64,000 nucleotides of DNA from Octopus bimaculoides (Eukaryota). A program made the position numbers and the translations under genes. Under the pieces are notes generated by a model. The model did no database searches and was not told the DNA's origin. It saw only the letters and a program-made list of their open reading frames with translations. The stretch is from the NCBI RefSeq assembly GCF_001194135.2, contig NC_068990.1:88427180-88491179 (forward strand). The letters run 5' to 3'. This document shows positions 1,673-63,394 of this stretch, in pieces (position 1 is the first letter of the stretch; each line of letters starts with the position of its first letter).

Positions 1673-1906
1673 TCGCTGAAAAAAATTTGTTGCTTAAACA
1701 AGTTACCATACCAGAGAAGTATGTCTTTAGACGGTTTGGGGACATGACCATAAAGAGTTGTGATGGAGCTTGCCAGCAATATCAAGAATGTAGGTCTTAT
1801 AAGTACAATGTAAAAGATAAACTGTGTGCTTTGAGTGGTTTATCACACGTGACTAATAAAATTATACCTACCAGTAGCAGCTGGGTCATAAGAATGGTTT
1901 ACGCAG
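1673..1906 (+). CDS. Exon B1: PAN/apple-like domain, class B (subtype a)
   Basis: ttccag|TCGCTG ... GCAG|gtcagt; 234 nt; CDGAC-x5-C-x11-C (CDGACQQYQECRSYKYNVKDKLCALS). Confidence 0.85.
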
Positions 1907-1992
1907 GTCAGTAGAGTGTTTCCACATTATTTATTGTGTGCGTGTCAGTGTGTATTTACATATTGTGTCTTTGCATATATGGGTATGTGTAC

Positions 1993-1997
1993 TTATA

Positions 1998-2032
<35 letters not shown>

Positions 2033-2043
2033 GTGTGCGTGTG

Positions 2044-2081
<38 letters not shown>

Positions 2082-2082
2082 A
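1993..2082. repeat. Compound (TA)n/(TATG)n microsatellite
   Basis: Direct inspection. Confidence 0.9.
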
Positions 2083-2408
2083 GTATTTTTACATACATTC
2101 ATTTGTTATTTATTGTTGGTTGATATATACATTCATTTTATTATTATTATTGTTGTATTTTGACCTGAAGATTAGCTATATTTTTGAATAGAATTGATTT
2201 TCAATCGATTTAATCGATTCGATTATATTTTATTTTCTATTTGAAAACTTGGTTATGAAACACGTGTAGTCGTTATTATTATTATTATTTTATGATTTTT
2301 ACTTTGTATTTTATTATACTAATTTATCGAGTGTTTACTTATTAATTTTTTCTCTATGTGACTGGATTTTCATGGATGAGTTCATGAACTTTGGTTCTTT
2401 TCTCTAAA

Positions 2409-2431
2409 TTATATATATATATGTGTGTGTG

Positions 2432-2526
<95 letters not shown>

Positions 2527-2538
2527 GTGCGTGTGTGT
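2409..2538. repeat. (TA)n microsatellite with (TG)n edges
   Basis: Direct inspection. Confidence 0.95.
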
Positions 2539-2754
2539 ATAACAAATTTATTGTTGAAACCAGCAAAAATGTATTTCATCCAGTGAGAGATAAATATCAT
2601 TTAATATATTCAGTATTAAAATTCAAGCTGCTATTACTTTCATAGTGTGAAAACACCATAATCTGGCAAGCTTGTATTACATGTTGTGTGTTTCTAAACA
2701 ATCTTTCAAATTCAAATATATAGCAGGGCTAGTTATTTTTGAGAAAATAAAAAA

Positions 2755-3340
2755 GGACACTGGTCTGGCATCAACCACACTCAAATGGTGATTTTTACAT
2801 GCCAATCAGGCGGTAGTGGCATCAGCCACAACATTTCACTTGACTCAGCAGGTTTTCTCAAGCACAGCACATTGCCCAATGCTTGAAAGATACTCTTAAA
2901 TGGGCCAGTTATGCAACACTGGCATAGGCTACAGCTACGGTCTCACTTGGCTTGTCAGGTCTTCTCAAACACAGCATATCTCCAAAGGTCTTGGTTGCTT
3001 TTCATTGCTTCCATGAAGCCCAATATTCGCTGGTTGTGCTTCATCACCTCATTCCAGGTCTTCCTGAGTCTACCTCTTCCACAGGTTCCCTCCACTATTA
3101 GGGTGTGACACTTTTTCACACAGCTGTCCTCATCCATACGTAACATGTGATCCTACCAGTGCAGTTACCTCTCTTGCACACCACATCTGATGCTTCTTAT
3201 GTCCCACTTTTCTCTCAGGGCACTGACACTGTTGTGTGTGCACACTGACATTACATATCCTACGGGGCATACTAGCTTCATTTCTTGCAAAATGTGTGAA
3301 GCACACATAGTGGTGCCATGTAAAAGCACCCAGAACACTT
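2755..3340 (-). mobile_element. RTE-clade LINE 3' fragment
   Basis: Minus-strand EDSCVKKCHTLIVEGTCGRGRLRKTWNEVM is the GRGRPRKTW-type C-terminus of RTE ORFs; same family as 21625-22425. Confidence 0.75.
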
Positions 3341-3694
3341 TGTAAAATGATTGGCATTAGGATGAGCATCTAGCCATAGAATTCATACCAAATCAGACTG
3401 GTGTCTGGCGCAGCTTGCCAGCATGTACAATGGATTGGACATTAAATGATAATGATAGATATATATTATATATGTCTATATAATATATACATACACACAT
3501 ATGTTGTGCATGCACACACACACACATATATAATGATGTGTATGTACATACATACATACATGTACAGCTGTTTACATATTTCTTTAGTTTGTTACATTCA
3601 ATACTTTTTGTTTTAAATGTGTCATTATCTCCCTATTTTCACCTTCCTCCTAACATATACTTGCCTTGATACCAATTTCTCTTCTCAATTCCAG

Positions 3695-3865
3695 GTTACT
3701 CAATAATTAACTGTGGACCCCTAAAAGACATTGCTGGTATCATGAAATCTCAAAATACCACCACCTATAAATCTGATATAACCTATACTTGTCCAGGAGG
3801 AGGAATATCAAAATTAAGATGTGAAGAGGACAATAAATGGATTCCAATAGTGTCTACCTGCAAAG
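3695..3865 (+). CDS. Exon S1: Sushi/CCP domain
   Basis: ttccag|GTTACT ... AAAG|gtaata; 171 nt; NCGPLKDIAG...TYTCPGGGISKLRCEEDNKWIPIVSTCK. Confidence 0.88.
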
Positions 3866-4684
3866 GTAATATAAATAGGTTCTCATTGTCTCTGACTCAG
3901 TAATTTTGTTTTGGTTTTGTTAAGTGTCGCAGAGGAAGAATGGCTGACTCCATGTCAGTTTCCACAGTGTTTGTGGTTAGTGAAAGACAGAGGAGGCTAT
4001 CCTCATGTCAGAGACATTCACAAATTCTTGCAAGGGAGTGAACTTCATTTAAAGAACACAAAAGGTCAGGTAATGTTATTAATTTGAGTGATGGTTTAAG
4101 TCTGCCTCACAAGAACAGAAGCTTGTTCTCTCTAAGAGGCTTCTACATTGTTTCCATCCATCAAATTTCATCTACAGAGCTTTATTTTGAACAAACTATA
4201 ACCATCAGCTAGAGGTTCTCAAAATACCCCATTGTTGAGCTTATTACCACTGCTATATCTCAGCTCATCTTGATAGTTTTTCTCTCAATTTTTAACTTGA
4301 CCTTTCTCATCTATACTTTGTGTCTTCATCCAAAATTTTGTACAATATATAGCACTGAATCGTTCTTTACTAGAATTCAGCAATAATTTGGAATTGACCC
4401 CTGATACTCTAGTGATTTTACATTCCACAATTCTAAATTATAATAACCCAAATAATTATAGTGGTTTCTGATTGGGATAAAGAGCCAACAATTTCTAATA
4501 GACAGTGTTTAGTCAGTATCATCGACTTTAGTATTTGACCGTTATATTATGTTACCAAGCCACCCCTCTCAAGAATAAAAGGAAAAAGTAACATTGGATG
4601 GGTTTCAACTGAAAATATGAAGAGCCTGAATAAATACCATGAAGCATTTCTTCCAGTTCTGTAACAAGTATACATTTGCACATT

Positions 4685-5230
4685 TAAAATAAAGATGAGA
4701 ATGATGATGCAATCCTCTGGAATGTAAATGGATCTTTGTCTAGGACTGTTTGAAGAACCCCACTTTCAAAGATCACCATGAACTCCACAGCCAAGTGTCC
4801 CCTCCAATTAGTAATCTCTGACAGGTTTATGCACGGTAGTTCCTATCCCCCTTTGATTTTTTTGTCACTTTCATGTCATTTTCAAGAATGTTCCCTCAGG
4901 ATAGTATCTTCATTGCCATCCATACCTTGTTTACAACTGAAACTTTAAAACTATGATGACCAAAAAGGCAAGTCTCTGTCAGTAGTCCTTATAACCTCTT
5001 CCACATCACAACTTCATTTGCTATTACTATCCAATAGAGAAAAACTGCCTTATCTGTCTGGTTAAAAGAGAGTGTGTGGCAATGATCATGGTGGGCTTCA
5101 CTGACAGCCAGATCTGCACCCCACACAGTAGCTGCTGTTTGACACAGCTTTCCATGTCAGCAATACATACACAATGAACAAGTGCATGCAATATGATTTT
5201 GTTGCCCTGCACATGTCTTGTGCCCCATTT
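4685..5230 (-). mobile_element. Ancient Tx1/L1-like 3' fossil, co-duplicated downstream of Sushi exons (also about 10690-11560, 20240-20520, 33540-34420, 49185-50060, 54500-54770)
   Basis: The block aaataaagatgag..gatgatg..atcc..tgaatg..gaaggatctct.tctaggacca.ttgaagaaccc recurs at the same relative position in six introns. The family call is my recognition. Confidence 0.55.
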
Positions 5231-5306
5231 TTTCCATTTTTTTAATTCATTTACTTGAATTGACTATATGTATGTATATACATATATATAATATATATAT
5301 ATATAT

Positions 5307-5337
<31 letters not shown>

Positions 5338-5950
5338 GCATCAGTGGATCATATATCCCAAAAAGAAACACACACATTGTTTCGTTTGAAGCAGTAATGT
5401 TGTCAACTTGGTCAAATGGTTGATCATATGGGATCATATGATTGTTCGTTAATTTCCATAAGAGTTTTTTTTATTTCTTTATGCTATGAAGAGAAGAGAA
5501 AGTGAAAAATGCATATATGTGTATATGAAATGGACATGTGTGTGTGTGTTGTCATGTATGTAGTTTTTGCATGGATATGTAAGTGGCACTCTCTCTCTCT
5601 CTCTCTCTCTGTCACACACACTCATTATCTTTCATATACACATACTTCATGCCAGCATGGAAAGTGGACATTAAAAAATGAAGATGCTGATGATGTTGAT
5701 GATGATAATGATGATGATAATATGTATATATGTATACTCATGCTCACCCATGCTAGCATGGAAAGCGGATGTTAAACGATATATGTTTACATACATGCAT
5801 ACATACATAATATGTATCTTTTTATATCAGTGTGTAAATATCTACGATTCGATTGTCTTGATGTCTATTTATGTAACATTTTCACTTCTCTTTTCAACCA
5901 CCTCTTAACATAAATGCACCATTGGCATCAATTTCTCCCTTTAGTTTCAG

Positions 5951-6121
5951 ATTATGTAAAAATTAACTGTGGACGTCCAAAAAATGTTCTTGGTGCGTCG
6001 AGTTTCTACACAACCACCAACTATAAATCTGCAGTGATCTACACTTGCCGAAGCGGAGAACAACAAAAGTCGACATGTGAATGGAAGAGCAAATGGACTC
6101 CTGTAGTGGAAGCGTGTAGAG
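5951..6121 (+). CDS. Exon S2: Sushi/CCP domain
   Basis: tttcag|ATTATG ... AGAG|gtaata; 171 nt; NCGRPKNVLGAS...YTCRSGEQQKSTCEWKSKWTPVVEACR. Confidence 0.88.
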
Positions 6122-6469: not shown

Positions 6470-7230
6470 TACTAAAAGAGCAACTAGGGAAAATACTCCG
6501 GATCATTTTCTGCATAGGAAAGAATTAGTAATGTGATTAATTATTTAAAATTTCACCTTGAGTGTATGGTAAACATTGATTATGTTAATGACTTATTCTG
6601 GTCATGAATTCAGGAGAGACAACATCATAAAGATAATTACTTTTGATGAATTAACATTTCTTAGCTAGCTACATTAAGTTTTTAGTGTCCACATTTACTG
6701 CATTTTTATATTTTTTTCACTAAATACTGATAGAAGTGAAATTAATTTTGTTTTCTAGAGCAATACATTATAAAATCAGTAAAGTCTTACCATAACTAGC
6801 CATATTTAGTTACATCCATTTATGTTATGGTTTCAAGTCACACATGGATTTACTTTGCTTTTCATAATTCTGAGGCTGATAAAACAAGCACTGGTCAAGT
6901 TCTAGTTCTAAAATTGATTAATTTTCATGAGTCCTCACTGCAGAAAATGTGGTCTTGTGTTTAAGTTATGCACACTTAAATTTAATATTGCTACCATGAA
7001 CACTACTTATAATTACTCTTGCCTTTAAGGGTGAAAGATTGTGAAAATTATTTGAGTATCAGACAAAATGTGTTGTGGTATTTGTTCTGGCTCATTAACT
7101 TCTGGGATCAACTCTTTCTAATGCTAACTTTGCCCTTCCAGGGTCATCAAAATACAATGCCATTCAAATGTTGATAATTCAATTGACCAATTATGACCTC
7201 AAATATATGACTATCTTTCTGTTTTGTAAA
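6470..7230 (+). repeat. Conserved pre-PAN-A intron block containing old SINE-like remnants (also about 12085-12780, 20615-21180, 34860-35960, 50600-51240, 54980-55680, 63480-64000)
   Basis: Shared motifs include ttatgttaatgacttattctggtcatgaattcag.agagacaac.tcataaagataat, gttgataaaa.aagcact and tgtggccttgtgtttaagt. Confidence 0.8.
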
Positions 7231-7290
7231 TGATTATTATTATTATTGTTGTTGTTGTTTTCATTGATCTAAATTTTATTTTAACTCTAG

Positions 7291-7527
7291 ACTCTCAGAT
7301 CCATTTTGTGAAAGTAGAAAATGCAATTTTGAATGTATCCAAGAAAACAATGTGGAAAACACGTGCAACATTAGAAGCCTGTGCTAAACAATGTCTGTCA
7401 AGCAAAAATTGTTTATCATTTGAAACAGATAAACAAAATGGAAAATGTTACTTATCACAGGAAAGTGCAGCTTTCTCCAAGAAATTAATACCAAGTACAC
7501 ACACAGATTACTACCAACGAATAGAAG
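7291..7527 (+). CDS. Exon A1: PAN/apple-like domain, class A
   Basis: ctctag|ACTCTC ... GAAG|gtaatt; 237 nt; HFVKVENA...CAKQCLSSKNCLSFETDKQNGKCYLS...DYYQRI. Confidence 0.88.
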
Positions 7528-7757
7528 GTAATTATTACTTTTGTTTTAGTATTGGACTTCAAATCTGTTGAACATGTTCTATATTTCACACGAATTATGA
7601 TTAGGCCATCAATCATTTCTAATAAATGGTTCATTTACAAATTATGCACCAGATGCTTTGCAATATTTAATAACTGTGTATGGTGTGTGCATGTGTGTGG
7701 GAGCGGTGGTGATGATGAGTATAAAATGTATTTCTTGTTTACTTTTTATTTTGCTAG

Positions 7758-7988
7758 CTGACAAGCCTTTCAACCTAAGAAGAGTTAGCATACCACGGAA
7801 GAGTACTTTTGGAACACTTAACTTTGAGACTGTAAGTGAGTGCGATGAAGCTTGTCGTCGATATCAAGGATGTAATTCTTATGAGTACAATGAAGAGACT
7901 AAGTTTTGTATTTTGAGTAATGTGACTCACTTGACTGGTAAACTTAAACCCAACAATGCAAGTTGGGATATATTCATGATTAACCCAG
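7758..7988 (+). CDS. Exon B2: PAN/apple-like domain, class B (subtype a)
   Basis: tgctag|CTGACA ... CCAG|gtcagt; 231 nt; CDEACRRYQGCNSYEYNEETKFCILSNVT...WDIFMINP. Confidence 0.88.
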
Positions 7989-9722: not shown

Positions 9723-9893
9723 TTTTCACACGAATTAACTGTGGACCTCCAAAAAACGTTTCTGGTGCAGTGAAATCCTTCAAAACTACCACATTTAAAT
9801 CTATAGTAATTTATACTTGCCCAAGGGGAGAACAACTGAGGTCAATATGTAAAATGAACAACAAATGGAGTGCGGTAGTGTCTAGCTGTAAAG
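9723..9893 (+). CDS. Exon S3: Sushi/CCP domain
   Basis: tttcag|TTTTCA ... AAAG|gtaaca; 171 nt; NCGPPKNVSGAV...YTCPRGEQLRSICKMNNKWSAVVSSCK. Confidence 0.88.
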
Positions 9894-12850: not shown

Positions 12851-13087
12851 AAATTGAGATTTATTTTGTGAAAGTAAAAGATGCAACTCTGGATGTATCT
12901 GAGAAAACACTGAAGGAAGAGAACTTAGCAGCAGATGAGTGTGCACACAGATGTTTGTTAGACAAAACCTGTTTATCATTTGAAATAGTTAAAACAAAAG
13001 GAAAATGTTACTTATCAAAAACAAGTGCAGCTTTCCACAAGAAATTAAAACCAACAATACAGAGGGATTACTACCAAAGAGTAAACC
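12851..13087 (+). CDS. Exon A2: PAN/apple-like domain, class A
   Basis: ctccag|AAATTG ... AACC|gtaatt; 237 nt; CAHRCLLDKTCLSFEIVKTKGKCYLS...RDYYQRV. Confidence 0.88.
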
Positions 13088-16441: not shown

Positions 16442-16675
16442 CCAATGATAAACCCGTGGTAATTAAAAAAGCTAACATACCAGATCAGTATACTTTTGGA
16501 CGATTTAAGAATAAGACCTTAGAGGAGTGTAGTCAAGCATGTCAGCAATATCAAGGATGTAATTCTTATGAGTACAACGAAAAAGATAAAATATGTGCCC
16601 TGAGTAATGTCACCCAGACAACTGAAGAACTTAAAGCTGACAATGGACTTTGGGGTATATATGTAATTAACTCAG
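16442..16675 (+). CDS. Exon B3: PAN/apple-like domain, class B (subtype a)
   Basis: tttcag|CCAATG ... TCAG|gtcagt; 234 nt; CSQACQQYQGCNSYEYNEKDKICALSNVT. Confidence 0.88.
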
Positions 16676-17812: not shown

Positions 17813-17983
17813 TTCACAGAAATATTGATTGTGGACCACCGATTGACGTTGCTGGTGCAACAAAGTCTTACAGTTCCACCACCTTTAAATCTAAAGTAAC
17901 TTACACTTGTCCAGGAAGAGAAACATTTAAATCGAAATGCAAAAAGAACAGTAAATGGACTCCAGTACCGTCTGTTTGCAAAG
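17813..17983 (+). CDS. Exon S4: Sushi/CCP domain
   Basis: ttcaag|TTCACA ... AAAG|gtaatg; 171 nt; DCGPPIDVAGAT...YTCPGRETFKSKCKKNSKWTPVPSVCK. Confidence 0.86.
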
Positions 17984-19336: not shown

Positions 19337-19507
19337 TTTACAGAAACATTGACTGCGGACCACCAAAAGACGTTGGTGGTGCATCAAAGTCCTTCAATAC
19401 CACCACCTTTCAGTCTGAAGTGATCTATATCTGCCCAAAGGGAGATAAATTAAAAGCAACATGTAATAAAGAAAACAAATGGACTACTGTAGTGTCTGAT
19501 TGTAAAG
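19337..19507 (+). CDS. Exon S5: Sushi/CCP domain
   Basis: ttccag|TTTACA ... AAAG|gtaatg; 171 nt; DCGPPKDVGGAS...YICPKGDKLKATCNKENKWTTVVSDCK. Confidence 0.88.
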
Positions 19508-21236: not shown

Positions 21237-21476
21237 ATATTCCAGCGAATTTTGTAAAAATAAGTAGCTCAGTTATGGATGTATCTGGGAAAATATTGTG
21301 GAATAAGAAAAATGTAACAGTAGAAGACTGTGCAGAAAAATGTTTGTCTTACAAAAATTGTTTATCGTTTGAAGTAACTAAAAAAGGTGGAAAATGTTAC
21401 CTACTTCAGGGAAGTGCAGCATCCGCCACAGAAATAAAAACATCAAATAGTAGAGATTACTACCAACGAGTAAAAC
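21237..21476 (+). CDS. Exon A3: PAN/apple-like domain, class A
   Basis: ttctag|ATATTC ... AAAC|gtaatt; 240 nt; CAEKCLSYKNCLSFEVTKKGGKCYL...RDYYQRV. Confidence 0.88.
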
Positions 21477-24015: not shown

Positions 24016-24216
24016 CCACTGTTGCGGAGGATAAAGCAAATACTGGACCACCTATGGATGAAAATGTAAAGAGGTGTTATCAAACTTGCCTGAATTATGT
24101 AGGGTGTAGATCATTTGAGTACAGTGAAAAAATGAATGCTTGTCATTTGAGTAATGTGACTCGCTTGACATATAAAATTCAACTTGACAATATAACTGGT
24201 TCCAATATGAAACCAG
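24016..24216 (+). CDS. Exon B4: shortened, remodelled PAN/apple-like class B domain (subtype b-like)
   Basis: ttgaag|CCACTG ... CCAG|gtcagt; 201 nt, open; keeps the four Cys (CYQTCLNYVGCRSFEYSEKMNACHLSNVT); N- and C-terminal parts diverged. Confidence 0.7.
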
Positions 24217-25437: not shown

Positions 25438-25608
25438 ATTACTCAAAAGTTGATTGTGGACCGCCGAAAGATATTGTTGGTGCATCAAAGTCCTACAATA
25501 CCACCACCTATAAATCTATAGTGACCTATACTTGTCCAAAGAAAGAAAAACTAAATTCAACATGTGAAAAGGACCATAAATGGACTCCAGTAGCTTCTAC
25601 TTGTAAAG
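25438..25608 (+). CDS. Exon S6: Sushi/CCP domain
   Basis: tttcag|ATTACT ... AAAG|gtatct; 171 nt; DCGPPKDIVGAS...YTCPKKEKLNSTCEKDHKWTPVASTCK. Confidence 0.88.
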
Positions 25609-27145: not shown

Positions 27146-27316
27146 CTTATAAATACATTGACTGCGGAAATCCAAAAGAAGTTGTTGGTGCAAAGAAGTC
27201 CTACAAAACTACCACTTATAAATCTGAAGTGACCTATATTTGTCCAAAGGGAGAGCAACTGAAATCGATATGTGAACAGAACAGTGAATGGACTCTCGTA
27301 GCAAAAACCTGCAATG
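27146..27316 (+). CDS. Exon S7: Sushi/CCP domain
   Basis: tttcag|CTTATA ... AATG|gtaata; 171 nt; DCGNPKEVVGAK...YICPKGEQLKSICEQNSEWTLVAKTCN. Confidence 0.88.
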
Positions 27317-28261: not shown

Positions 28262-28345
28262 TTTTATATTTCATTGCTCTATATTTTTTACTTTAAATCC
28301 AGTTTTTATATTTCATTGCTCTATATTTTTTACTTTAAATCCAGT
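28262..28345 (+). repeat. Perfect 42-bp tandem duplication containing the A4 splice acceptor
   Basis: ttttatatttcattgctctatattttttactttaaatccagt at 28262-28303 and 28304-28345. Confidence 0.97.
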
Positions 28346-28584
28346 TAACCAAATCTATTTTGTGAAAGTGAGAGGTGCACATCTGGATGTTTTTGAGAAA
28401 ACATTGTGGTCTAAAACACGGACAACAGCAGAAAACTGTGCGAAAAAATGTCTGTCTGACAAAAACTGCTTATCATTTGAAGTAACTAAAGGAAGAGCAC
28501 GATGTTACTTATCAAAGAAAAGTGCAGCTCTCTCTGACAAACTAAGAGTGGCCAAGGCCAGAGATTACTACCAACGAGTAAAAG
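28345..28584 (+). CDS. Exon A4: PAN/apple-like domain, class A
   Basis: atccag|TTAACC ... AAAG|gtaatt; 240 nt; CAKKCLSDKNCLSFEVTKGRARCYLS...RDYYQRV; a duplicated acceptor lies 42 nt upstream. Confidence 0.87.
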
Positions 28585-31653: not shown

Positions 31654-31887
31654 CTGACGACAAGTTCTTAATACTTAAAAGAGTTAGCATACCACCAAAT
31701 AATATTTTGGGGCACCTTAAGAATAAGACATTAAAGGATTGTAGTGAAGTTTGCCAACACTATCCAAGATGTAATTCTTATCAGTATAATAAAAAAGATA
31801 AATTATGTGACCTGAGTAATGCAACTCAGGCAACCCCTGAACTTAGACCCAACAATGGAAAGTGGGATACTTACATCTTTAAAGAAG
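31654..31887 (+). CDS. Exon B5: PAN/apple-like domain, class B (subtype a)
   Basis: ttccag|CTGACG ... GAAG|gtcagt; 234 nt; CSEVCQHYPRCNSYQYNKKDKLCDLSNAT...WDTY. Confidence 0.88.
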
Positions 31888-32542: not shown

Positions 32543-32713
32543 CTCACAGAAAAATTGACTGTGGACCACCAAAAGATGTTGCTGCTGCAAAAAAGTCCTA
32601 CACATCCACCACCTATAAATCTGAAGTGACCTATAAGTGTCCAATGGCACATGTATTGAAATCAGTGTGCAAAGAGGATAATAAATGGACTTCTGTAGTG
32701 TCAAGTTGTAAAG
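32543..32713 (+). CDS. Exon S8: Sushi/CCP domain
   Basis: ttccag|CTCACA ... AAAG|gtaata; 171 nt; DCGPPKDVAAAK...YKCPMAHVLKSVCKEDNKWTSVVSSCK. Confidence 0.88.
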
Positions 32714-36016: not shown

Positions 36017-36256
36017 ATACTCTGATCCAGTTTGTGAAAATAAAAGATGCATTTCTTGATACATATGGAAAATCACCATTGAACCAGAAAAATGCAACAC
36101 CAGAAGAATGTGCAACAAAATGTTTGTCTTACTCAAATTGTTTATCGATTGAAATGGATAATGAAAATGGGAAATGTTTCTTATCAACAAAATCTGCAAC
36201 TTCTTCCAAGACATTAAAAGGAGCCAAAAGGAAAGATTACTACCAACGTATAAAAC
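36017..36256 (+). CDS. Exon A5: PAN/apple-like domain, class A
   Basis: ttctag|ATACTC ... AAAC|gtaatt; 240 nt; CATKCLSYSNCLSIEMDNENGKCFLS...KDYYQRI. Confidence 0.88.
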
Positions 36257-38529: not shown

Positions 38530-38763
38530 TTTTTAGTGAGATTTTTAAATTTAAAAATGCTTACATACCAAAGCATGATACTTTTGGACAACTGAAAAAT
38601 GTGAGCTTAAATGAGTGCAAACATGTTTGTTATCAGACTTCAGAGTGTAACTCTTATGAGTATAATGAAATAACTTTGCTATGTGATCTAAGTAATGTAA
38701 CTCACCTGACTCATGACCTTCAACCCAACAATGAGGGTTGGGATATTTACATAATTAACCCAG
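38530..38763 (+). CDS. Exon B6: PAN/apple-like domain, class B (subtype b); absent from the ORF track
   Basis: atctag|TTTTTA ... CCAG|gttagt; 234 nt; FKFKNAYIPKHDTFGQLKNVSLNECKHVCYQTSECNSYEYNEITLLCDLSNVT...WDIYIINP. Confidence 0.87.
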
Positions 38764-40042: not shown

Positions 40043-40213
40043 TTTTCCTGGCTGTTGACTGTGGACCTCCAAAAGATGTAGTTGGTGCATTGAAATCCTA
40101 TAAAACTACCACCTTTAAATCTGAAGTGATGTACACTTGTGAAAATGGAGACCAACTTAAGTCAACTTGTGAAAAGAACAACAGATGGTCTCCTGTAGAG
40201 AATGCTTGTAACG
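40043..40213 (+). CDS. Exon S9: Sushi/CCP domain
   Basis: tttcag|TTTTCC ... AACG|gtaaca; 171 nt; DCGPPKDVVGAL...YTCENGDQLKSTCEKNNRWSPVENACN. Confidence 0.88.
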
Positions 40214-42588: not shown

Positions 42589-42828
42589 TTTCTGTATTAT
42601 ATTTTGTGAAAATAAAAAATGCATTGCTGGATGTATCCAAGAAAACATTGTTGAAGAAGAAAAATGTAACAGCAGATGCCTGTGCAGAAGAATGTGTGTC
42701 TGACAAAAGCTGTTTATCATTTGAAATAATAAAAAAAAGTGGAAAATGTTACTTATCAAAGAAAAGTGCAGCTACCTCTAAGAATATAAAAGTGACCAAA
42801 CACAGGGATTACTACCAACGAGTGAAAC
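42589..42828 (+). CDS. Exon A6: PAN/apple-like domain, class A
   Basis: ttccag|TTTCTG ... AAAC|gtaatt; 240 nt; CAEECVSDKSCLSFEIIKKSGKCYLS...RDYYQRV. Confidence 0.88.
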
Positions 42829-43163: not shown

Positions 43164-43226
<63 letters not shown>

Positions 43227-43273: not shown

Positions 43274-43498
43274 ATGATGGGAAACATATTAAATTTATAA
43301 AAGTTACATTACAAAGAAGACATATTTTTGGACGGCTTAAGGATAAGGACTTAAAGGAGTGTAATCAAGCTTGCCATGACTTTCCAGGATGTATTTCTTA
43401 TGAATACCGTGCGAAAGATAAGTACTGTGACCTGAGTAATGAGACTCATGAACTTATACCCAAAGGTGTAGGTTGGGAAACTTACCTCATTAATAAAG
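43274..43498 (+). CDS. Exon B7: PAN/apple-like domain, class B (subtype a); absent from the ORF track
   Basis: ggtcag|ATGATG ... AAAG|gtcagt; 225 nt (in-frame 9-nt loss); CNQACHDFPGCISYEYRAKDKYCDLSNET...WETYLINK. Confidence 0.85.
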
Positions 43499-47708: not shown

Positions 47709-47879
47709 TTTTCTCAAAAGTTGACTGTGGACCACCAAAAGACATTGCTATTGCATCAAAATCCTACAATACTACTTCCTATAAATCTGAAGTGACCTAT
47801 TCTTGTCCAGGAGGACATGAATTAAAGGCAATATGTAATGAATACCATAAATGGGCTCCAGAAGTTACTGCTTGTAACG
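47709..47879 (+). CDS. Exon S10: Sushi/CCP domain
   Basis: ttccag|TTTTCT ... AACG|gtaatc; 171 nt; DCGPPKDIAIAS...YSCPGGHELKAICNEYHKWAPEVTACN. Confidence 0.88.
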
Positions 47880-50249: not shown

Positions 50250-50471
50250 CCCTTTTGATACCAACCCAGCTGAAACTGCTTCAGGCTCTGTAAGACAAAT
50301 GTCTTGTTTTCAAAAGTTCTGAATTAAAATCTTCCATCAAACCTTAGTCACAATTTATGTTCCTAACACTAACTTAATGATAACTAAGTTATTTTACTAA
50401 ATTCTTTGTTATATTTAAAATTAACTGAAAGAAACATAGAGCATCTCAACAGAAATATGGTAACAAAAGGG
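50250..50471. mobile_element. piggyBac-type MITE (about 222 bp)
   Basis: TIRs cccttttgatacc / ggtaacaaaaggg (12/13 match), flanked by ttag and ttaa. Paralogous introns (about 6365, 11980) show the empty site cataattagagaaagcaatg. Confidence 0.75.
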
Positions 50472-51302: not shown

Positions 51303-51542
51303 TTGCTGAGACCCATTTTGTGAAAGTAAAAAGTGCAGCTCTAGATGTACCCAAGAAAACATTATGGAATAAGGAAAATGTAACAGAAGAAGCTTGTGCA
51401 GAAAAATGCGTGTCTGACAAAAAGTGTTTATCATTTGAAATAATTAAAAAAAGTGGGAAATGTTACTTATCAAAGGAAAGTGCCGCTACCTCTAAGAAAA
51501 TGAAAGTAGACAATAGCAGAAATTATTATCAACTAGTAGAAC
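51303..51542 (+). CDS. Exon A7: PAN/apple-like domain, class A
   Basis: ttccag|TTGCTG ... GAAC|gtaatt; 240 nt; CAEKCVSDKKCLSFEIIKKSGKCYLS...RNYYQLV. Confidence 0.88.
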
Positions 51543-52617: not shown

Positions 52618-52851
52618 CCAAAGGTGATCTTTTTACATTTAAAAACACTATCATAGTTGAGAAGGATACTTTTGAAACACTGAAAAATGTGAGCTTAAAG
52701 GAGTGTTATAAAACTTGCCTTCAAAATCCAGGGTGTAACTCTTTTGAGTATAAGGAAGAGGCAAAGATCTGTAATCATAGTAGTGTCAATCACTTGACTT
52801 ATGACCTTAAACCAAGCAAAGATAGTTGGGATACTTACATCATTAACCCAG
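52618..52851 (+). CDS. Exon B8: PAN/apple-like domain, class B (subtype b); absent from the ORF track
   Basis: ttttag|CCAAAG ... CCAG|gtcagt; 234 nt; FTFKNTIIVEKDTFETLKNVSLKECYKTCLQNPGCNSFEYKEEAKIC...WDTYIINP. Confidence 0.87.
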
Positions 52852-53593: not shown

Positions 53594-53764
53594 TTCATGA
53601 AAAAGTTAACTGTGGACTTCCAAAAGATGTTCCTGGTACATTGAAGTTCTACAAAACCACCACCTATAAATCTGAAGCAACCTATACTTGTTCAAAAGGA
53701 GAACAACTAAAGTCAACATGTGAAATTAACAACAAATGGACTCCTATTGTATCAAACTGTACAG
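53594..53764 (+). CDS. Exon S11: Sushi/CCP domain
   Basis: ttccag|TTCATG ... ACAG|gtaatg; 171 nt; NCGLPKDVPGTL...YTCSKGEQLKSTCEINNKWTPIVSNCT. Confidence 0.88.
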
Positions 53765-55737: not shown

Positions 55738-55977
55738 TTGCTCAGATCCATTTTGTAAAAGTAAATGGTGCAGCTATGGATTTATCTAAGAAAACATTGT
55801 GGGATAAGAAAAATGTAACAGCAGAAGCCTGTGCAGAAAGATGTGTGTCTGACGAAACTTGTTTATCATTTGAAATAACTAAAGAAAGTGGGAAATGTTA
55901 CTTATCAGAGAGAAGTGCAGCTGCCTCTGAGAAAATAAAAGTAGACAAGGGCAGAGATTACTATCAACAAGTAAAAC
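55738..55977 (+). CDS. Exon A8: PAN/apple-like domain, class A
   Basis: ttccag|TTGCTC ... AAAC|gtaatt; 240 nt; CAERCVSDETCLSFEITKESGKCYLS...RDYYQQV. Confidence 0.88.
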
Positions 55978-56572: not shown

Positions 56573-56806
56573 CCCATGATAAGCCTTTTGTGTTGAAAAA
56601 AGTTAACATACCAAAGCAGGATATTTTGAAACGGTTTAAGAATGTGAACTTAAAGAAGTGTAATGAAGCTTGCCATCAATATCTAGAATGTAATTCTTAT
56701 CAGTACAATGAGAAAACAAAGTTATGTGATCTGAGTAATGTGACTCAGTTGACTGATAAACTTAAACCCAGTGATGGAAGTTGGGATGTATACGTGATTA
56801 ATCCAG
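56573..56806 (+). CDS. Exon B9: PAN/apple-like domain, class B (subtype a)
   Basis: ttgtag|CCCATG ... CCAG|gtcagt; 234 nt; CNEACHQYLECNSYQYNEKTKLCDLSNVT...WDVYVINP. Confidence 0.88.
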
Positions 56807-56873: not shown

Positions 56874-56950
<77 letters not shown>

Positions 56951-56956
56951 GTGATC

Positions 56957-57008
56957 NNNNNNNNNNNNNNNNNNNNNNNNNNNNNNNNNNNNNNNNNNNN
57001 NNNNNNNN
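56957..57008. other. Assembly gap (52 N) with near-duplicated (TG)n flanks
   Basis: ttatatctgtgtg...gtgatc occurs on both sides of the gap. Confidence 0.95.
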
Positions 57009-57013
57009 TTATA

Positions 57014-57064
<51 letters not shown>

Positions 57065-57689
57065 GTGATCATCCTCATCATCATCATTTAAGGTCTGTCT
57101 TCCATGCTGGCATGGGTTGGACAGTTTCACCGGAGCTAGACATGCTGTGGAGCTGCATTAGGTTTTATTGTCTGCTTTGGCCTAGTTTCTACTGCGGATG
57201 CCTTCCCTAATGTCAACCACTTTATAGAGTGCTTTTTAATGTGAGACCAGCATTGGTGCTTTTTATGTGGCACTGACAGCAGTGGAGTCATCAAGTAAAT
57301 TGTGAGACTAAGACCTCTCTGCTTGGAGAGAAGTGGAAACAAAGGAGATGACTTCATGTCAGTTTAGAGTTAAAGGCATAATAGAGAGATAGAGATAGGT
57401 GTCTTACTATAGAAGAGATAATTGGCTACCCCAGTAGGAAAAGAAAGATGAGGAAGAAAAGAGAGAGTTAGAGAGAGTCAGAGTGAGAGAAAGAAACAAG
57501 TAAGTGGTGGGGAGTATAACTGGTACAGAAGTAAGAGAGTAGGTGTTCCACAAGAGTATGAGAGTAGATGTTTAGAGATGGTGAAGAGATGACTGTAGCA
57601 AGTGGTGGTGAGGAAATTTGGACTGGCTGAGAGTGGAGTAGGTAGATAAGTGAAAGTATGATGGAGAGTGTGCTTGTAGACACATAAGG

Positions 57690-59100
57690 GATAGCAGTGG
57701 GTGGTGATCGTGGGTGGGGAGTAGGAGGGTTTTGACAGCGAACAGATTATGTGTGTGACGGGCACACAGCCATAAAGGACATGCCTGTATATATGGATGG
57801 CATAATTTTATCTAGCTTGATATGTCTTCTCATGCACAGCAAATTGCTTGAGGTCTTAGTTGTTTGTCATCTCTGTGAGGCTCAACATCTGAAGATCAGT
57901 CCTCACCACTTCATCCCACATCTTCCTGAATCTGCCTCTTTCACAGGTTTCCTTTATAACTTGAAATCAGTACTTTTTTATGCAGTTGTCCCCATTGCAC
58001 CACATGACCATAGTAACACAGTCTTCTCTTTAGCACACTACATTTGATGCCACTCATACCCAATTTTTCTCTTAAAACATTTACACTCTGTTGTACATGC
58101 ACATCTAGCAGAGCATGCTGGCTTCATTTCTTTCAAGCCTTTGCATGTCCTCTGCTGTCATGGATAATGTCTCACTGCCATGTAGCATAGCAGTTCATAC
58201 ACAAGCATTGTACAATCTACCTTCTACTCTGATGGAGAAATTCTTTCATTCCTACAAATTTAGTAGCTCCCTAAACTTTGCACAGCCTATTCTTATTCTA
58301 GCAGTTATGTTTTCAGAACGACCCATCCACAACTAACTTGGTCACCTAGGTAGAAGAAGCTATCTACTACTTCTAAAGACACCCATTGGACATTGGACAT
58401 TGGAGAAGGTCTATTTCCTCTACATTCTTAGTCTTTATTGTACTTGCACATCTGCTGCATACAAAGACTACTTTCTTTGATAACTTTCTTGTGATACCAC
58501 TGCATTTCTTATGTGTCCATAGCTTGCACTGGGTACACCATATGGAATTCCTATCTACACTTTTTCTACATGTGCATTCTCACCTCCACCTTTACTGCAT
58601 ATGCATCTCATCTAGACTAACTCTCTTCCTAGTTAAGCTATTTCCCCTCTCTGAAACTTTCATGACCTGGTCTAGGAATTTGATACCCCTGTAGTTCTTT
58701 CTAAGGCATCACCTTTACCTTTGCAGTAGGACATGACTGTAATACTGCTGCACCAATCATTGGGTATGACTCCCTGTTGGACAACTTGATTAAGTGTACA
58801 GGTAGCTAGATAATATCAAACTCTGCCAGATATTCTAAGCATCTCGGCAGTGATTTCTGATGGTCTGGGAGCTTTCCATGCTTTCCTATCCTTAATTGCT
58901 TTATCTACCAAGCTACCAGTAGTGATTCAGCTATAAGAACAAGGTCATCAGCAAAGAGGAGCTCTCAGAGCAGCCCATCTCAAGTTCCTCTGTTATTGCC
59001 TGGAGGACTATAATGAACAAGAGGGGTTGACGACTGATCCTTGGTGAACCCCTACTTGCACCCTGAATTCAACGCTATACTCATTACCAACCCTCACCTA
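57690..59100 (-). mobile_element. Degenerate RTE-clade LINE (RT to near 3' end)
   Basis: Minus strand VRVGNEYS.EF.VQVGVHQGS...LLFIIVLQAI...LLFADDLVL, continuing as decayed RTE C-terminal sequence. Confidence 0.75.
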
Positions 59101-59412: not shown

Positions 59413-59583
59413 TTTACACAGAAACTGACTGTGGACAGCCAAAAGACATTTCTGATGCATCAAAATCTTACAACACCACTACCTTTCATTCTGAAGTGAG
59501 CTATTCTTGTCCAGGAGGACATAAGCTAAAAGCAATATGTAAAGAAGGCAATAGATGGCTTCCAGTAATGACTTCTTGTAAAG
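59413..59583 (+). CDS. Exon S12: Sushi/CCP domain
   Basis: ttccag|TTTACA ... AAAG|gtaatg; 171 nt; DCGQPKDISDAS...YSCPGGHKLKAICKEGNRWLPVMTSCK. Confidence 0.88.
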
Positions 59584-60132
59584 GTAATGTAAGAAGGTTC
59601 TCACTTTTTCCTCTGTCTAGATAATTTTGTTTTATTTTTGTGTTGAGTTTCTTTATCAGTGAAAGACTGGCTATACTCATGTCAGTTTTCATGGTCTTTG
59701 TGGCTGGTTGGAAGGAGAGAAGCATTTACATAACCTCAGACCAAATATTTTTGCAAATGCTTGCAACAGAGTGGATGTCATTAAATCTATTCAAAGGCAA
59801 GGTAATGATATCAAATTTAGTTGATACATTAAGTTTTCCACTGAAGAACAGGAAGCACTAGAGCATGTTCTTTCCAGAAGGCTTCCACATAGTTTAGAGT
59901 AAAGATTGTTTGCCAACATAACATGGCAGTCCTGATTTAGGACAAATGTTGCTGTAATTTAGCCCCAGGAGACATTGTCTCCACCTGGCTATATGACGTG
60001 ATCTGTGTCCTTATATTTTCGAACAAGGGAATCGATTCTGACCTCAAATTTTTGTCTTTCTGTCTATGTTAGAAATTATTTTTTTTATTGTTGCTGTTGT
60101 TTTCATTGATGTAAATTTTACTTTAATTCCAG

Positions 60133-60372
60133 TTGCTGAGACCCATTTTGTGAAAATAAAAAGTGCAGCTCTAAATATATCTGGGAAAACATTGTGGAAA
60201 AAAGCAAAAGTAACAGCAGAAGCCTGTGCAGAAAGATGTGTGTCTGACGAAACTTGTGTATCATTTGAAATAATGAGAAAAACTGAGGAATGTTACTTAG
60301 CAAAGAAAAGTGCAGCTACCTCTAAGGAAATAGAAGTAGACGATAGCAGAGACTACTATCAACAAGTAAAAC
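60133..60372 (+). CDS. Exon A9: PAN/apple-like domain, class A
   Basis: ttccag|TTGCTG ... AAAC|gtaatt; 240 nt; CAERCVSDETCVSFEIMRKTEECYLA...RDYYQQV. Confidence 0.88.
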
Positions 60373-61149
60373 GTAATTATTCTTTGTGCTTTATTATTGG
60401 AATTTTCAACACAAACACAGCAGTTCTAAGGGGAGTGTTAATTCATACTACTTACCACAATTCTTGACTGGTATTATATTGTATCTGCACCAGATGATGG
60501 AGTTTGAACTTGGAGTATAATAAGACAGAAGACATAAGCAAGGTAGCATGTCTTTTGCACAGTATTTCACCATTTGTTGCATTCCTTTATAATCTGACAT
60601 GTAAAATAACAGAATAAAGTAATGCTAATTTATTTAGTCATGTATCTCCTATACTTTGGTATGGTTATTATGGCTTTATGCCTTTCCTGTAACCAACCAT
60701 TATACCCACATAAAGAGAGTTCTTTTTTCCATGCTACTAGAATTCGAGAAAATAGGAACAGTTCCATAGTATTAAGTAGAAAACAGCCAGCAAATTCACT
60801 GGAATTGATCACAAGGATTTTGTCTTTCCTACCAAGACCCTTTCTTCTTGATATGCTGTGCTCAGGGAAAACACTAGATTTAGTGACCTCAATGTTTGAA
60901 TACTCATGAATGCCTGCATGCCATTTCTATCATGATGAATCTTTCTTGTCAAAAATAAATGAGAGCCATTTCTTTGTATATCTATGAGACAACTGTAATA
61001 GGCCAAAATTGCCAACCTCACTACAATATGTATTCTGTGTGCAATCAAGAATTTCAGACAAATTCATGGCTCAGGTTTATACAAAGATAATTGCCTATTT
61101 CAAGTAATATGAACAACCCCTTCAGGCCTTGTGGCTATTGTAGAAACTA

Positions 61150-61175
61150 TCATCATCACCACCACGACGACGATG

Positions 61176-61206
<31 letters not shown>

Positions 61207-61215
61207 TCATCATTA
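61150..61215. repeat. (CAT/CAC/GAC)n trinucleotide microsatellite
   Basis: Direct inspection. Confidence 0.9.
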
Positions 61216-62008
61216 TTCAACATTTGATAGTTTCAGGCAAATTTCCACTGCATTATTTGCTACACCTCTGTGTTGCTGATGTGTGTGCAGCCTTGTGTGG
61301 TCTTGTTTTCTTTCTGCTGTTGGGGGAGTACAAACTCTTCCAAGTATTGTATTGCATCCATTTGTTTTGTCATGTGGTTTGACTTTAGTCTTTTGTTGTA
61401 TTAGTGTTTGCATTGTGTGTTGTGTGTGTAATGCGAGTTGTGTTCTTCTGTTGGGTATCCGACCTATAGAGTACATGTTGTAGTGGTTGTTTATTTTATT
61501 GGATATTTACTGTGTAGAGTGAATCTTGTGTTTGTAAATTGTTTATTCAGGTTGTACTATTGAAGTGATAATGTTTTACACAAGATGTGGGCTTCTCCGA
61601 GCAGGGATATTTTTTGGAGTGTGTAGAATTCTATTATATCATAAGACATAGTTGGAAGCCACCTCATTGTTTAGATTGCAAATTATGTGTCAATCTGTCT
61701 TCTGCTGATGTGCTTTTCTTTAAAATTAAATGGCTATAACAACACTTGACACATCAGTTGGTCATCAGTTTAACAGCACTTAGGCCATTACAAGAGGAAT
61801 GTACAAAAGGATTATATGCTACTTATATTTTGAAACAAGGTTTCAAATGAGTCTCAAGATTTTCTACACTCACATGAATTCTGACTAAGCTGTCATTTTG
61901 TGGATCAATTTTTTTGTTTATAATAAATTGTACTACATAGATGCTATATAATATTTAATGTATGTTTGAGTATAAAATGTATTTCTTGTTTCCTTTCTTT
62001 CTTTCTAG

Positions 62009-62242
62009 TTGATGAGGATATTTTTACATTTAAAAATATTATCTTAGATGTGCAGGATGTTTTTGAACCACTGACAAATCTGAGCTTGAAGGAGTGTAAT
62101 GGAGCTTGTCGTCAGACTCCAGGATGTAACTCTTATAAGTATAATGAAAAGAGAAAGTCCTGTCATGGAAACAATGCAACTTACTTGATCCATGACCTGA
62201 AGCCAAACAAAAAGGGTTGGGATACTTACATCATTAACCCAG
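62009..62242 (+). CDS. Exon B10: PAN/apple-like domain, class B (subtype b)
   Basis: ttctag|TTGATG ... CCAG|gtcagt; 234 nt; FTFKNIILDVQDVFEPLTNLSLKECNGACRQTPGCNSYKYNEKRKSC...WDTYIINP. Confidence 0.87.
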
Positions 62243-62329
62243 GTCAGTAGGGAGTTTACATTTTATTTATTGCGCATGCAATTACATGTGTGTGTTTGTG
62301 TGTCTTTGCATTTATGTACATGTGTGTGT

Positions 62330-62366
<37 letters not shown>

Positions 62367-62405
62367 AAAATAAAAGAGAGGTTTGTATGATAGTGTATAG
62401 AGGAA

Positions 62406-62760
62406 TATATTATTTAAAAGAGTTCCAACTCTGTCTGTTTTTTATGTTTTATTTATATTCTTATAAAATTAATGTGGGATATAGAATATAGAATATATAA
62501 TATAAATAGTAAAATGAAATGAAGTATTGAATGTCTTATTGAATATATGAAATATTGAGTATTAAATATATAAGGACTAGTATACTTTCCTGATGACTGC
62601 CATGAGGCAGGAAAGTATACTAGTCCTTATATAAGACATTTGATACTTCATTTCATTGTACTAGTTATATTATATATTCCATATTCTATATCCCACATTA
62701 ATTTTATAAGAATATAAATAAAACATAAAAAACAGAGTTGGAACTCTTTTAAATAATATA
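62406..62760. repeat. Long AT-rich inverted repeat (about 355 bp) with a hammerhead-like core at its apex
   Basis: Arm 62406-62592 is the near-exact reverse complement of 62608-62760, apart from two small indels and a few substitutions; CTGATGA-ctgc-catgag-gcag-GAAA at 62590-62614. Confidence 0.9.
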
Positions 62761-62792
62761 CTTATATATATATACATGATAGCCATCTACTC

Positions 62793-63130
62793 ATGACCAA
62801 GGAAGACCATTGCTGACCTTTAAGAATATTGTGCGCTCTAGGACTAATATTTTGCATTTGCAGCTCTGTTGGTGGCTAATGAGCCCTACTCTTGATAAAC
62901 ATACATGACTGCAAACATTGCAAATCAAGCTTTCTTCATTCACTACACTAGCAGTGCACTTTCGAGTAGCACGCTTAAATTTTTCATGCAGAATACGTAC
63001 TCTCTCAAAGGTGTCAACCCCCTCCTTAACCTGCTTCCTCCATCTGTAGTGATGACAGGCGTTGCTCTCCCAGACAGTCTCCTGCATATCACAGGCCTTT
63101 ATTGAGGACTTGGCTCAGTCTTTAAATCAC
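62793..63130 (-). mobile_element. RTE-clade LINE extreme 3' coding end
   Basis: LICNVCSHVCLSRVGLISHQQSC matches the C..C...C.SRIGL.SH C-terminal finger of RTE elements. Confidence 0.7.
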
Positions 63131-63223
63131 AGCCTTGGTTTCTGCCAAGATCTTCTGTTGTATCATTATCAATTTCTGCTCTTTCTCACTCAGCTCCTAA
63201 TATATACTTATAATCAATTCTAG

Positions 63224-63394
63224 TTTTAGCAAAAGTTAACTGTGGAACTCCAAAAGAGGTTGTTGGTGCATCAAAGTTCTACAGTACCACCAAATATAAA
63301 TCTGAAGTGATCTATATTTGTCCTGGAGACGAAACACTAAAGTCAGTATGTGGGAAGGACAACAAATGGACTTCAGTAGCTCCTATTTGTGAAG
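63224..63394 (+). CDS. Exon S13: Sushi/CCP domain
   Basis: ttctag|TTTTAG ... GAAG|gtaacg; 171 nt; NCGTPKEVVGAS...YICPGDETLKSVCGKDNKWTSVAPICE. Confidence 0.87.

Follow-up and report, generated by a model that had tools for sequence, protein, structure and literature searches.

A 64,000-nt stretch of Octopus bimaculoides chromosome CM046610.1 (about 88.427-88.491 Mb; hereafter the window) carries an array of repeated exons that encode PAN and Sushi (complement control protein, CCP) modules, all on the + strand between positions 1673 and 63394. Stop-free segments fell into three peptide classes, and the splice limits were set by aligning each class together with its flanks, which gave 32 exons (9 PAN-A, 10 PAN-B and 13 Sushi; Table 1). 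All 32 are bordered by an AG acceptor and a GT donor and are of phase 1-1, with two nt of the split codon at the start and one nt at the end. Every Sushi exon is 171 nt long (13/13); PAN-A exons measure 240 nt (seven) or 237 nt (two), and PAN-B exons 234 nt (seven), 231, 225 or 201 nt. With A, B and S standing for PAN-A, PAN-B and Sushi, the order is B S S / A B S / A B S S / A B S S / A B S x6, i.e., a 5'-truncated unit followed by nine complete units. Joined together, the exons form 6672 nt or 2224 codons without any in-frame stop, compared with 172 and 259 stops in the remaining two frames and a mean of 171 (minimum 131) in a shuffled-exon control. Four Cys columns are invariant in each of the three classes (128 Cys in total), and amino acid identity between paralogues within the window ranges over 38-64% for Sushi, 38-70% for PAN-A and 24-58% for PAN-B. 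The joined chain contains 32 N-X-S/T sequons and 13% Lys. A sequence-only reading of the same DNA had proposed 32 intact exons and a stop-free chain of 2224 codons, both of which were recovered independently at the same limits; its counts also hold (29 of 56 residues identical between the Sushi modules S1 and S8, invariant Cys columns, the Sushi Trp in 13/13 copies and the constant Sushi length). Rfam and tRNA scans of the window gave no matches.

Both PAN classes were recognized by Pfam PAN_1 (clan CL0168) on single exons (E 7.6e-13 to 3.4e-7), with 36-48 bits for PAN-A and 30-36 bits for PAN-B exons against a curated cut-off of 21.4 bits, and the Octopus vulgaris model P0001 reached 657 bits over 28 stretches. 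The pattern C-x3-C-x5-C-x11-C is invariant in 9/9 PAN-A and 10/10 PAN-B exons, and each of these 19 modules has four Cys, the third disulfide of the apple domain (six Cys) being absent. The PAN modules are of the HGF/plasminogen N type, and of the 'PAN/apple' wording of the sequence-only reading the apple part does not hold. The AlphaFold2 (AF2) model of PAN-A 55738 (predicted local distance difference test score, pLDDT, 91) has the PAN fold, a curved antiparallel sheet with a single alpha-helix packed against it, and was matched by Foldseek to plasminogen (4a5t, E 8e-4, template modelling (TM) score 0.77), and the comparison with the plasminogen and HGF N domains (3hmr, TM 0.77) gave TM 0.77-0.78 with a root-mean-square deviation of 1.7-2.5. 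Leech antiplatelet protein, the Sarcocystis galactose lectin SML-2 and factor XI apple 4 were further fold matches.

In the 56-residue Sushi module, C6, C32, C42, C55 and W48 are invariant in all 13 exons. A single exon scored 16.5 bits with Pfam Sushi (PF00084; cut-off 20.7 bits), a 675-aa stretch with five copies 32.8 bits and P0001 129 bits, and a profile of the 13 exons searched against PDB sequences found CCP proteins only (DAF, E 3e-10; CR2, CR1, MASP-2 and MCP). The AF2 model of Sushi 19337 is all-beta (pLDDT 82); Foldseek found no match for it at E <= 0.001, a model of 56 residues being too small to be placed. One-module exons with phase 1-1 introns are typical of CCP genes, and all 13 Sushi exons have this form; PAN and CCP modules are extracellular binding modules. 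Both domain calls of the earlier reading were thus supported, PAN_1 exon by exon and Sushi on the multi-copy protein and by the PDB profile. PAN-B exons can additionally be sorted into an 'FxFKN...' subtype (38530, 52618, 62009) and a 'DKPxxLKK...' subtype (7758, 16442, 31654, 56573), whose alternation in the 3' half of the window and in the O. vulgaris model P0157 suggests a two-unit higher-order repeat.

The window exons are transcribed and spliced in series, also across unit boundaries. Five exact GT..AG junctions were detected in RNA contigs of runs X14 and X33: S5951->A7291 (6121->7291, X33), A7291->B7758 (7527->7758, X14), S53594->A55738 (53764->55738, X14), A55738->B56573 (55977->56573, X14) and B56573->S59413 (56806->59413, X33). 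Two of the five cross a unit boundary, from Sushi to the PAN-A exon that opens the following unit. Spliced transcripts over the predicted exons, on which the earlier exon chain depended, were thereby observed, and the unannotated PAN-A 28345 is covered by a 200-nt RNA contig (X14). Tandem acceptors 6 nt apart, both in frame, are present at 5943-5951 ('tttag TTTCAG ATTATG'), the upstream one being used in XP_052826949 with the addition of Val-Ser, and an exact 42-nt tandem duplication at 28262-28346 spans the polypyrimidine tract and acceptor of PAN-A 28345, so that this exon has a second candidate acceptor at a distance of 42 nt.

The O. vulgaris locus L002 contains collinear 1:1 orthologues of 19 window exons (24016 to 60133). 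All 19 retain their AG/GT sites, contain no stops and are equal in length or 3 nt different; 18 of them are 88-96% identical at the nt level, and PAN-B 24016 is 82% identical over a gapped alignment. Indels are multiples of 3 in 18/19 exons (PAN-B 24016 has 18 gap columns yet is 201 nt long in both species). As the orthologues (82-96% identical) are collinear and closer to each other than the best paralogous matches (67-86%), the units predate the species split and have not been homogenised. All 76 Cys compared between O. bimaculoides and O. vulgaris are kept. Without constraint, about 16 of the ~311 substitutions should have created a stop, and none did. Selection has maintained the open frame, the Cys of the predicted disulfides and the splice sites from a time before the two species separated.

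The ratio of non-synonymous to synonymous divergence (dN/dS) over 1308 codons was 0.79 (NG86), 0.94 (LWL85), 0.93 (YN00) and 0.84 (maximum likelihood), and the four methods gave 1.12-1.48 for PAN-A, 0.64-0.74 for PAN-B and 0.60-0.73 for Sushi. When scaffold and variable codons were defined by conservation among the window's own paralogues, dN/dS was 0.29 at scaffold sites (p = 0.0015 vs neutrality) and 0.91 at variable sites (p = 0.56), the latter indistinguishable from neutral. The 'fixed scaffold, variable surface' proposed by the sequence-only reading agrees with these values and with the complete retention of Cys, scaffold sites being far from a ratio near 1. Variable sites are more diverged at non-synonymous positions (0.098, p = 3e-8; PAN-A 0.128) than the introns are (0.067 over 19.8 kb aligned). 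Between paralogues within the window, dN/dS was 0.55-0.80.

The window is an internal 62-kb segment of a much larger array on the same strand. A-B-S-A exons within 8 kb upstream extend it in the 5' direction, and orthologue models of O. vulgaris and O. sinensis run on downstream of the window and extend it in the 3' direction. RefSeq has five consecutive + strand models for O. bimaculoides (1133 aa; LOC128248838, 709 aa; LOC128248839, 1865 aa; LOC128248840, 761 aa; and a 4083-aa model), with a total of 8551 aa. In O. vulgaris, five adjacent models (2247, 4470, 861, 857 and 3597 aa) total 12,032 aa, their gene ranges sum to >1 Mb, and the array lies between an NDUFV1-like gene and a transposase-like gene. 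The 761 residues of XP_052826949.1 (P0010, LOC128248840, 'uncharacterized') correspond to the splice chain from Sushi 3695 to PAN-B 24016; the start codon of this model is a Met only five codons short of the end of exon 1673-1906, and its last exon is a 32-nt mini-exon that carries no untranslated region (UTR). LOC128248839 ends by read-through of a PAN-A donor, and P0005 does so at a PAN-A donor whose PAN-B partner lies ~1.3 kb downstream (L001 about 2465). Intact exons between models were left unannotated both in the 8 kb upstream of the window (PAN-B, Sushi and PAN-A) and within it (Sushi 25438, Sushi 27146 and PAN-A 28345). Because of the Met start near an exon end, the mini-exon without UTR, the donor read-through and these unannotated exons, the RefSeq model borders look artificial, i.e., computational. 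The 2224-codon open frame of the sequence-only reading stands, but not as a whole gene, as it covers only an internal part of an array that runs to at least 8.5-12 thousand codons. Inside the window, neither an exon for a signal peptide nor a terminal exon with a stop was seen, and no signal peptide, membrane anchor or glycosylphosphatidylinositol (GPI) anchor was found there; none of the O. vulgaris models shows a signal peptide, and the first of them (P0004) lacks an obvious hydrophobic N-terminus.

In protein database searches, close relatives were found only in Octopus species, then in a small Argonauta protein, and the next best matches beyond octopods were generic PAN arrays of an annelid and other invertebrates, which fits the lineage-restricted expansion suggested earlier; a protein search with a unit profile gave only 5 short matches. 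The Argonauta hians protein (GAB1601772.1, P0024) is a hypothetical protein of 356 aa with a signal-peptide-like start and (PAN-A, PAN-B) x2 without Sushi. A search of the literature by domain names and LOC/XP identifiers found no paper that names or describes a PAN-PAN-Sushi family. In the skin-mucus proteome of O. vulgaris, three 'Apple-like' and three 'Sushi' proteins were reported, without these loci being named in its supplements; in a cephalopod venom preprint, Sushi comes up for unrelated toxins only. The earlier description of the protein as undescribed is therefore right in that no characterised entry or paper was found, and wrong if taken to mean absence from databases, where fragmentary RefSeq/ENA models exist (e.g., LOC128248840, and others named 'SVEP1-like').

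The assembly gap, 52 N at 56957-57008, begins 151 nt into the intron downstream of PAN-B 56573-56806, in a (TG)n tract. In X33, a 116-nt RNA contig follows the window as far as 56806 and then continues with TTTACACAGAAACTGACTGTGGACAGCCAA, the first 30 bases of Sushi exon 59413. In the orthologous intron of O. vulgaris, which has no gap, the two flanks of the microsatellite/gap segment map next to each other, and no open frame resembling PAN or Sushi was found. Since RNA is spliced across this intron and the orthologous intron is free of gaps, the reading frame is independent of the gap. The 31-mers of the window were present at 0.92-0.96 in independent DNA runs from 2015, 2022 and 2025, and the array DNA is therefore not an assembly artefact. 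Long microsatellites, (TTG)109 and (GT/TG)26-39, are located at 1151-1478, 1565-1624, 43165-43223 and 56876-57067, in the same relative position just up- or downstream of several PAN-B exons, and the gap lies inside one of them.

The intron flanks of all 32 exons can be aligned among paralogous units for 100-900 nt (e.g., 7528-7757, 56310-56572 and 3866-4949), and mean pairwise nt identity upstream of PAN-B exons (0.64-0.74) equals or exceeds that within PAN-B exons (0.56-0.75); these flanks could be splicing control elements or simply reflect slow decay. Most of the 18 orthologous introns are about 1.05-14 times longer in O. vulgaris than in O. bimaculoides (e.g., 8249 vs 595 nt; two are shorter), and exon order and phase are unchanged despite these length changes. 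Several intronic segments (5730-5809, 7170-7329, 27646-28093, 48628-48806, 50239-50596, 54792-55023 and 59900-60059) had RNA contig depths of 1e3-1e5 and many partial matches in every RNA run examined, and behave like abundant interspersed repeats of the octopus genome, similar to short interspersed nuclear elements (SINE-like). Retroelement-type open frames were also detected in introns at 46037-46498 (+), 58376-58579 (-), 39198-39674 (+), 18452-18856 (+) and 22187-22480 (-), of which two contain a recognizable PHD finger (Pfam E 1.5e-6 and 3.2e-5) and three have no Pfam match. Read-through of Sushi donors (GGT AAT, Gly-Asn) leads into a short hydrophobic tail, 'GN(I/V)N.F.L..S....ILF*', at 3866-3900, 17984-18033, 47880-48121, 63395-63489 and other Sushi donors, mostly with early stops. 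The C-terminus predicted for O. vulgaris P0001 ('GNINGLFLVLSAYVILF*') is of this same form, and the tail may be a relic or an optional terminal (GPI-signal-like) ending.

Table 1. Array exons and the assembly gap in the window, with the main observation for each (positions are counted from the first nt of the window)
Feature	Position	Strand	Observation
PAN-B, 234 nt	1673..1906	+	phase 1-1; PAN-A partner upstream of window (L001 6774-7016)
Sushi/CCP, 171 nt	3695..3865	+	within RefSeq model P0010 (XP_052826949)
Sushi/CCP, 171 nt	5951..6121	+	RNA junction 6121->7291 (X33); RefSeq takes acceptor 6 nt upstream
PAN-A, 237 nt	7291..7527	+	RNA junctions 6121->7291, 7527->7758
PAN-B, 231 nt	7758..7988	+	Pfam match; RNA junction 7527->7758
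Sushi/CCP, 171 nt	9723..9893	+	class alignment
PAN-A, 237 nt	12851..13087	+	class alignment
PAN-B, 234 nt	16442..16675	+	class alignment
Sushi/CCP, 171 nt	17813..17983	+	class alignment
Sushi/CCP, 171 nt, second of pair	19337..19507	+	AF2 model pLDDT 82
PAN-A, 240 nt	21237..21476	+	class alignment
PAN-B, 201 nt, short, divergent	24016..24216	+	PAN_1 E 3.4e-7; orthologue L002 2350-2550; last array exon of P0010
Sushi/CCP, 171 nt	25438..25608	+	orthologue 95% nt identity; among RefSeq models seen, in none
Sushi/CCP, 171 nt	27146..27316	+	O. vulgaris orthologue
PAN-A, 240 nt	28345..28584	+	200-nt RNA contig inside exon (X14); 42-nt tandem duplication at acceptor
PAN-B, 234 nt	31654..31887	+	O. 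vulgaris orthologue
Sushi/CCP, 171 nt	32543..32713	+	O. vulgaris orthologue
PAN-A, 240 nt	36017..36256	+	O. vulgaris orthologue
PAN-B, 234 nt, 'FxFKN' subtype	38530..38763	+	orthologue 96% nt identity
Sushi/CCP, 171 nt	40043..40213	+	O. vulgaris orthologue
PAN-A, 240 nt	42589..42828	+	O. vulgaris orthologue
PAN-B, 225 nt	43274..43498	+	O. vulgaris orthologue
Sushi/CCP, 171 nt	47709..47879	+	orthologue; X32 RNA depth on exon, none at 47912-48090 read-through
PAN-A, 240 nt	51303..51542	+	O. vulgaris orthologue
PAN-B, 234 nt	52618..52851	+	O. vulgaris orthologue
Sushi/CCP, 171 nt	53594..53764	+	RNA junction 53764->55738 (X14)
PAN-A, 240 nt	55738..55977	+	RNA junctions 53764->55738, 55977->56573; AF2 pLDDT 91, PAN fold
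PAN-B, 234 nt	56573..56806	+	RNA contig joins 56806 to 59413
Assembly gap, 52 N, non-coding	56957..57008	.	within intron (TG)n microsatellite
Sushi/CCP, 171 nt	59413..59583	+	RNA junction from 56806; 95% aa identity to O. vulgaris P0001
PAN-A, 240 nt	60133..60372	+	O. vulgaris orthologue
PAN-B, 234 nt	62009..62242	+	82% aa identity to P0001 159-235
Sushi/CCP, 171 nt	63224..63394	+	last in window; next PAN-A visible in O. sinensis orthologue P0012

Taken together, these exons are best read, with a probability of roughly 60%, as an internal segment of a very large octopod-restricted array encoding a giant extracellular multivalent binder with fast-evolving surfaces. This reading is favoured because of the established roles of PAN and CCP modules, the fold matches (heparin-, collagen- and galactose-binding PAN proteins) and the selection pattern; a binding, adhesion or immune function and an extracellular location are inferred. 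Each repeat unit has one exon for PAN-A, one for PAN-B and one or two for compact CCP/Sushi modules, which makes three or four phase-1 exons, and the predicted product would be a giant N-glycosylated, Lys-rich extracellular protein of the 'beads-on-a-string' type. In such a protein, disulfide-locked PAN pairs might present fast-changing surfaces with rigid CCP modules spacing them, and many slightly different sites could act together in the multivalent binding of glycans or proteins. A conserved scaffold with the rest changing at or above the neutral rate, most strongly in PAN-A, is the pattern of partner-tracking proteins, for which pathogen or microbe recognition, gamete or self/non-self recognition and adhesion are candidate roles.

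Several observations weigh against this interpretation. RNA support is thin, with contigs at depth 2-4 and low expression in the runs examined, and three deep RNA runs from 2026 (X24-X26) gave essentially no exon coverage at 6% of reads sampled. The RNA evidence consists of pairwise junctions, with no single molecule carrying the whole chain, so that several genes or many isoforms are possible. A signal peptide, a membrane anchor and the true terminus were not found, and every database model starts or ends mid-domain. At PAN-A variable sites, dN/dS was 1.53, which is not significantly >1 against dS (p = 0.11); moreover, dS itself (0.095) is higher than intron divergence, so the intron yardstick is probably low. 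With two species, relaxed loop constraint and diversifying selection cannot be separated.

It is possible, though clearly less probable than the reading above, that several multi-unit genes stand head to tail in the array, or that it forms a single locus with internal promoters, internal poly(A) sites and extensive exon skipping; the 2224-codon chain would then never be made as one protein. The division into five models per species by RefSeq/ENA, the pairwise character of the RNA junctions and the phase 1-1 structure of all exons, which keeps any subset in frame, would all be compatible with such a cluster, as would the end of P0001, which is reached through Sushi donor read-through into a hydrophobic tail, the same potential tail following most Sushi exons of the window. 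However, the model borders that suggest this division look computational (the Met start and 32-nt mini-exon of LOC128248840 and the donor read-through of P0005), intact conserved unannotated exons, one of them transcribed, lie between the models, and neither a signal-peptide exon nor a stop-bearing terminal exon was seen in the window.

Somewhat more doubtful is a structural or matrix protein (mucus, egg coat or cuticle-like matrix), in which repeats add length and cross-linking and the high dN/dS reflects relaxed loops and not diversification driven by a partner. The composition is repetitive, Lys-rich and glycosylated, dN/dS at the variable sites (0.91, p = 0.56) cannot be told from neutrality, annelid mucin-like proteins (e.g., Dimorphilus P0022) likewise contain long PAN arrays, and the skin-mucus proteome of O. 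vulgaris includes 'Apple-like' and 'Sushi' proteins, which are not linked to this locus. On the other hand, the units are conserved 1:1 over the 19 exons compared, neither homogenised nor variable in copy number, dN/dS of whole PAN-A is >1 by four of four methods, and non-synonymous divergence at variable sites is higher than intron divergence (p = 3e-8).

A far more speculative idea, to which little credence is given, is that the whole array (~8,500-12,000 codons over ~0.3 to >1 Mb) is one transcription unit whose ~120-170 symmetric phase-1 exons are chosen combinatorially, helped by the conserved intron flanks, and give cell- or individual-specific recognition repertoires. If true, it would be an octopod-invented analogue of Dscam or clustered-protocadherin diversity that could serve immunity or self/non-self recognition, e.g., as a skin cue stopping suckers from gripping the animal's own arms.

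Tandem small genes, each with a signal peptide, PAN, PAN, Sushi and a membrane anchor, would make the long frame a chaining artefact, and are very improbable. Open frames do continue as hydrophobic stretches, both before PAN-A exons ('MLEIIFFIVAVVFIDVNF...') and after Sushi exons ('GNINRFSLVVSVLVILF'), and Argonauta hians has the small protein with a signal peptide and two PAN-A/PAN-B pairs; but these stretches are T-rich polypyrimidine tracts and intron starts with indels that are not multiples of 3 and stops in 11/13 copies, RNA is spliced from Sushi to the next PAN-A at the exact predicted sites in two cases, and X32 covers Sushi 47709 and not its 'anchor' read-through. The mini-gene idea was rejected on these grounds, the flanks being T-rich intron with stops and frame-breaking indels through which the RNA is spliced. 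A decaying, non-functional array that drifts neutrally, to which the overall dN/dS of 0.79-0.94 and the very low expression might point, is ruled out because frame, splice sites, Cys and scaffold are maintained (no stops in 2224 codons or in the 19 orthologous exons, where ~16 were expected; indels in multiples of 3 in 18/19 exons, with all AG/GT kept; 76/76 Cys; scaffold dN/dS 0.29, p = 0.0015).

Should the reading as a giant multivalent binder hold, a megabase-scale gene or gene cluster of octopods would assemble old modules into a new PAN-PAN-CCP super-repeat. Retention of Cys and splice sites with surface turnover at or above the neutral rate is the signature of immune, gamete-recognition and host-microbe interface proteins, and the locus offers a concrete, testable candidate for the study of recognition in an animal that lacks antibody-type immunity. 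It is also a clear case of automated annotation breaking a giant repeat gene and leaving conserved exons unannotated.

Among known systems, the closest in design are CSMD1-3, very large vertebrate-conserved proteins in which CUB alternates with Sushi, one module per phase-1 exon, followed by a terminal Sushi run and a membrane anchor. Both are giant and extracellular, with a binding module alternating with a CCP/Sushi spacer, whereas the octopus array has a PAN pair in place of CUB, is octopod-restricted and fast-evolving, and has no anchor found. No Pfam match to CUB was detected in the window product or in the O. vulgaris/Octopus models scanned, and the resemblance to CSMD is one of design only. 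SVEP1 is likewise a giant extracellular adhesion protein with many Sushi modules, but it is defined by VWA, EGF, pentraxin and HYR domains and has no PAN modules. None of these four domains was detected in the window product, P0001, P0002, P0005 or P0006, in which only PAN-family and Sushi domains pass cut-offs, and the automatic name 'SVEP1-like' given to O. vulgaris and O. sinensis models is a misnomer.

The HGF/plasminogen N domain shares the PAN_1 match, the four-Cys pattern and the predicted fold (TM 0.77-0.78) with the octopus modules; HGF and plasminogen have a single N-terminal PAN followed by kringles and a protease, whereas at least 19 PAN modules are present in the octopus window as A-B pairs with CCP. 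Factor XI/prekallikrein and microneme proteins (MIC4; SML-2) also contain tandem PAN-superfamily modules that bind protein or galactose, but their apple domains have six Cys (the third disulfide joins the N and C ends), are arranged in arrays of 2-11 modules and lack CCP, unlike the four-Cys modules of the octopus. In evolutionary behaviour, the closest type is sea urchin EBR1 (TSP1+CUB), which, like abalone VERL (ZP-N), is a giant repeat glycoprotein of species-specific recognition with fast-evolving repeats. Each is built from a repeated module or module pair, as the octopus array is, but the modules differ in both, and VERL repeats evolve in concert whereas octopus units are individually orthologous. 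The octopus array is a member of neither the CSMD nor the EBR1 family. Within octopods, GAB1601772.1 of Argonauta hians pairs PAN-A with PAN-B in the same way, down to the 'DYYQ' at the PAN-A end; it differs in its small size, signal-peptide-like start, two A-B pairs and lack of Sushi, and may be similar to the ancestral building block. Lineage-specific expansions are a known trait of cephalopod genomes, and what is new here is the PAN-PAN-CCP super-repeat architecture, assembled from known modules in one lineage, very large and fast-evolving.

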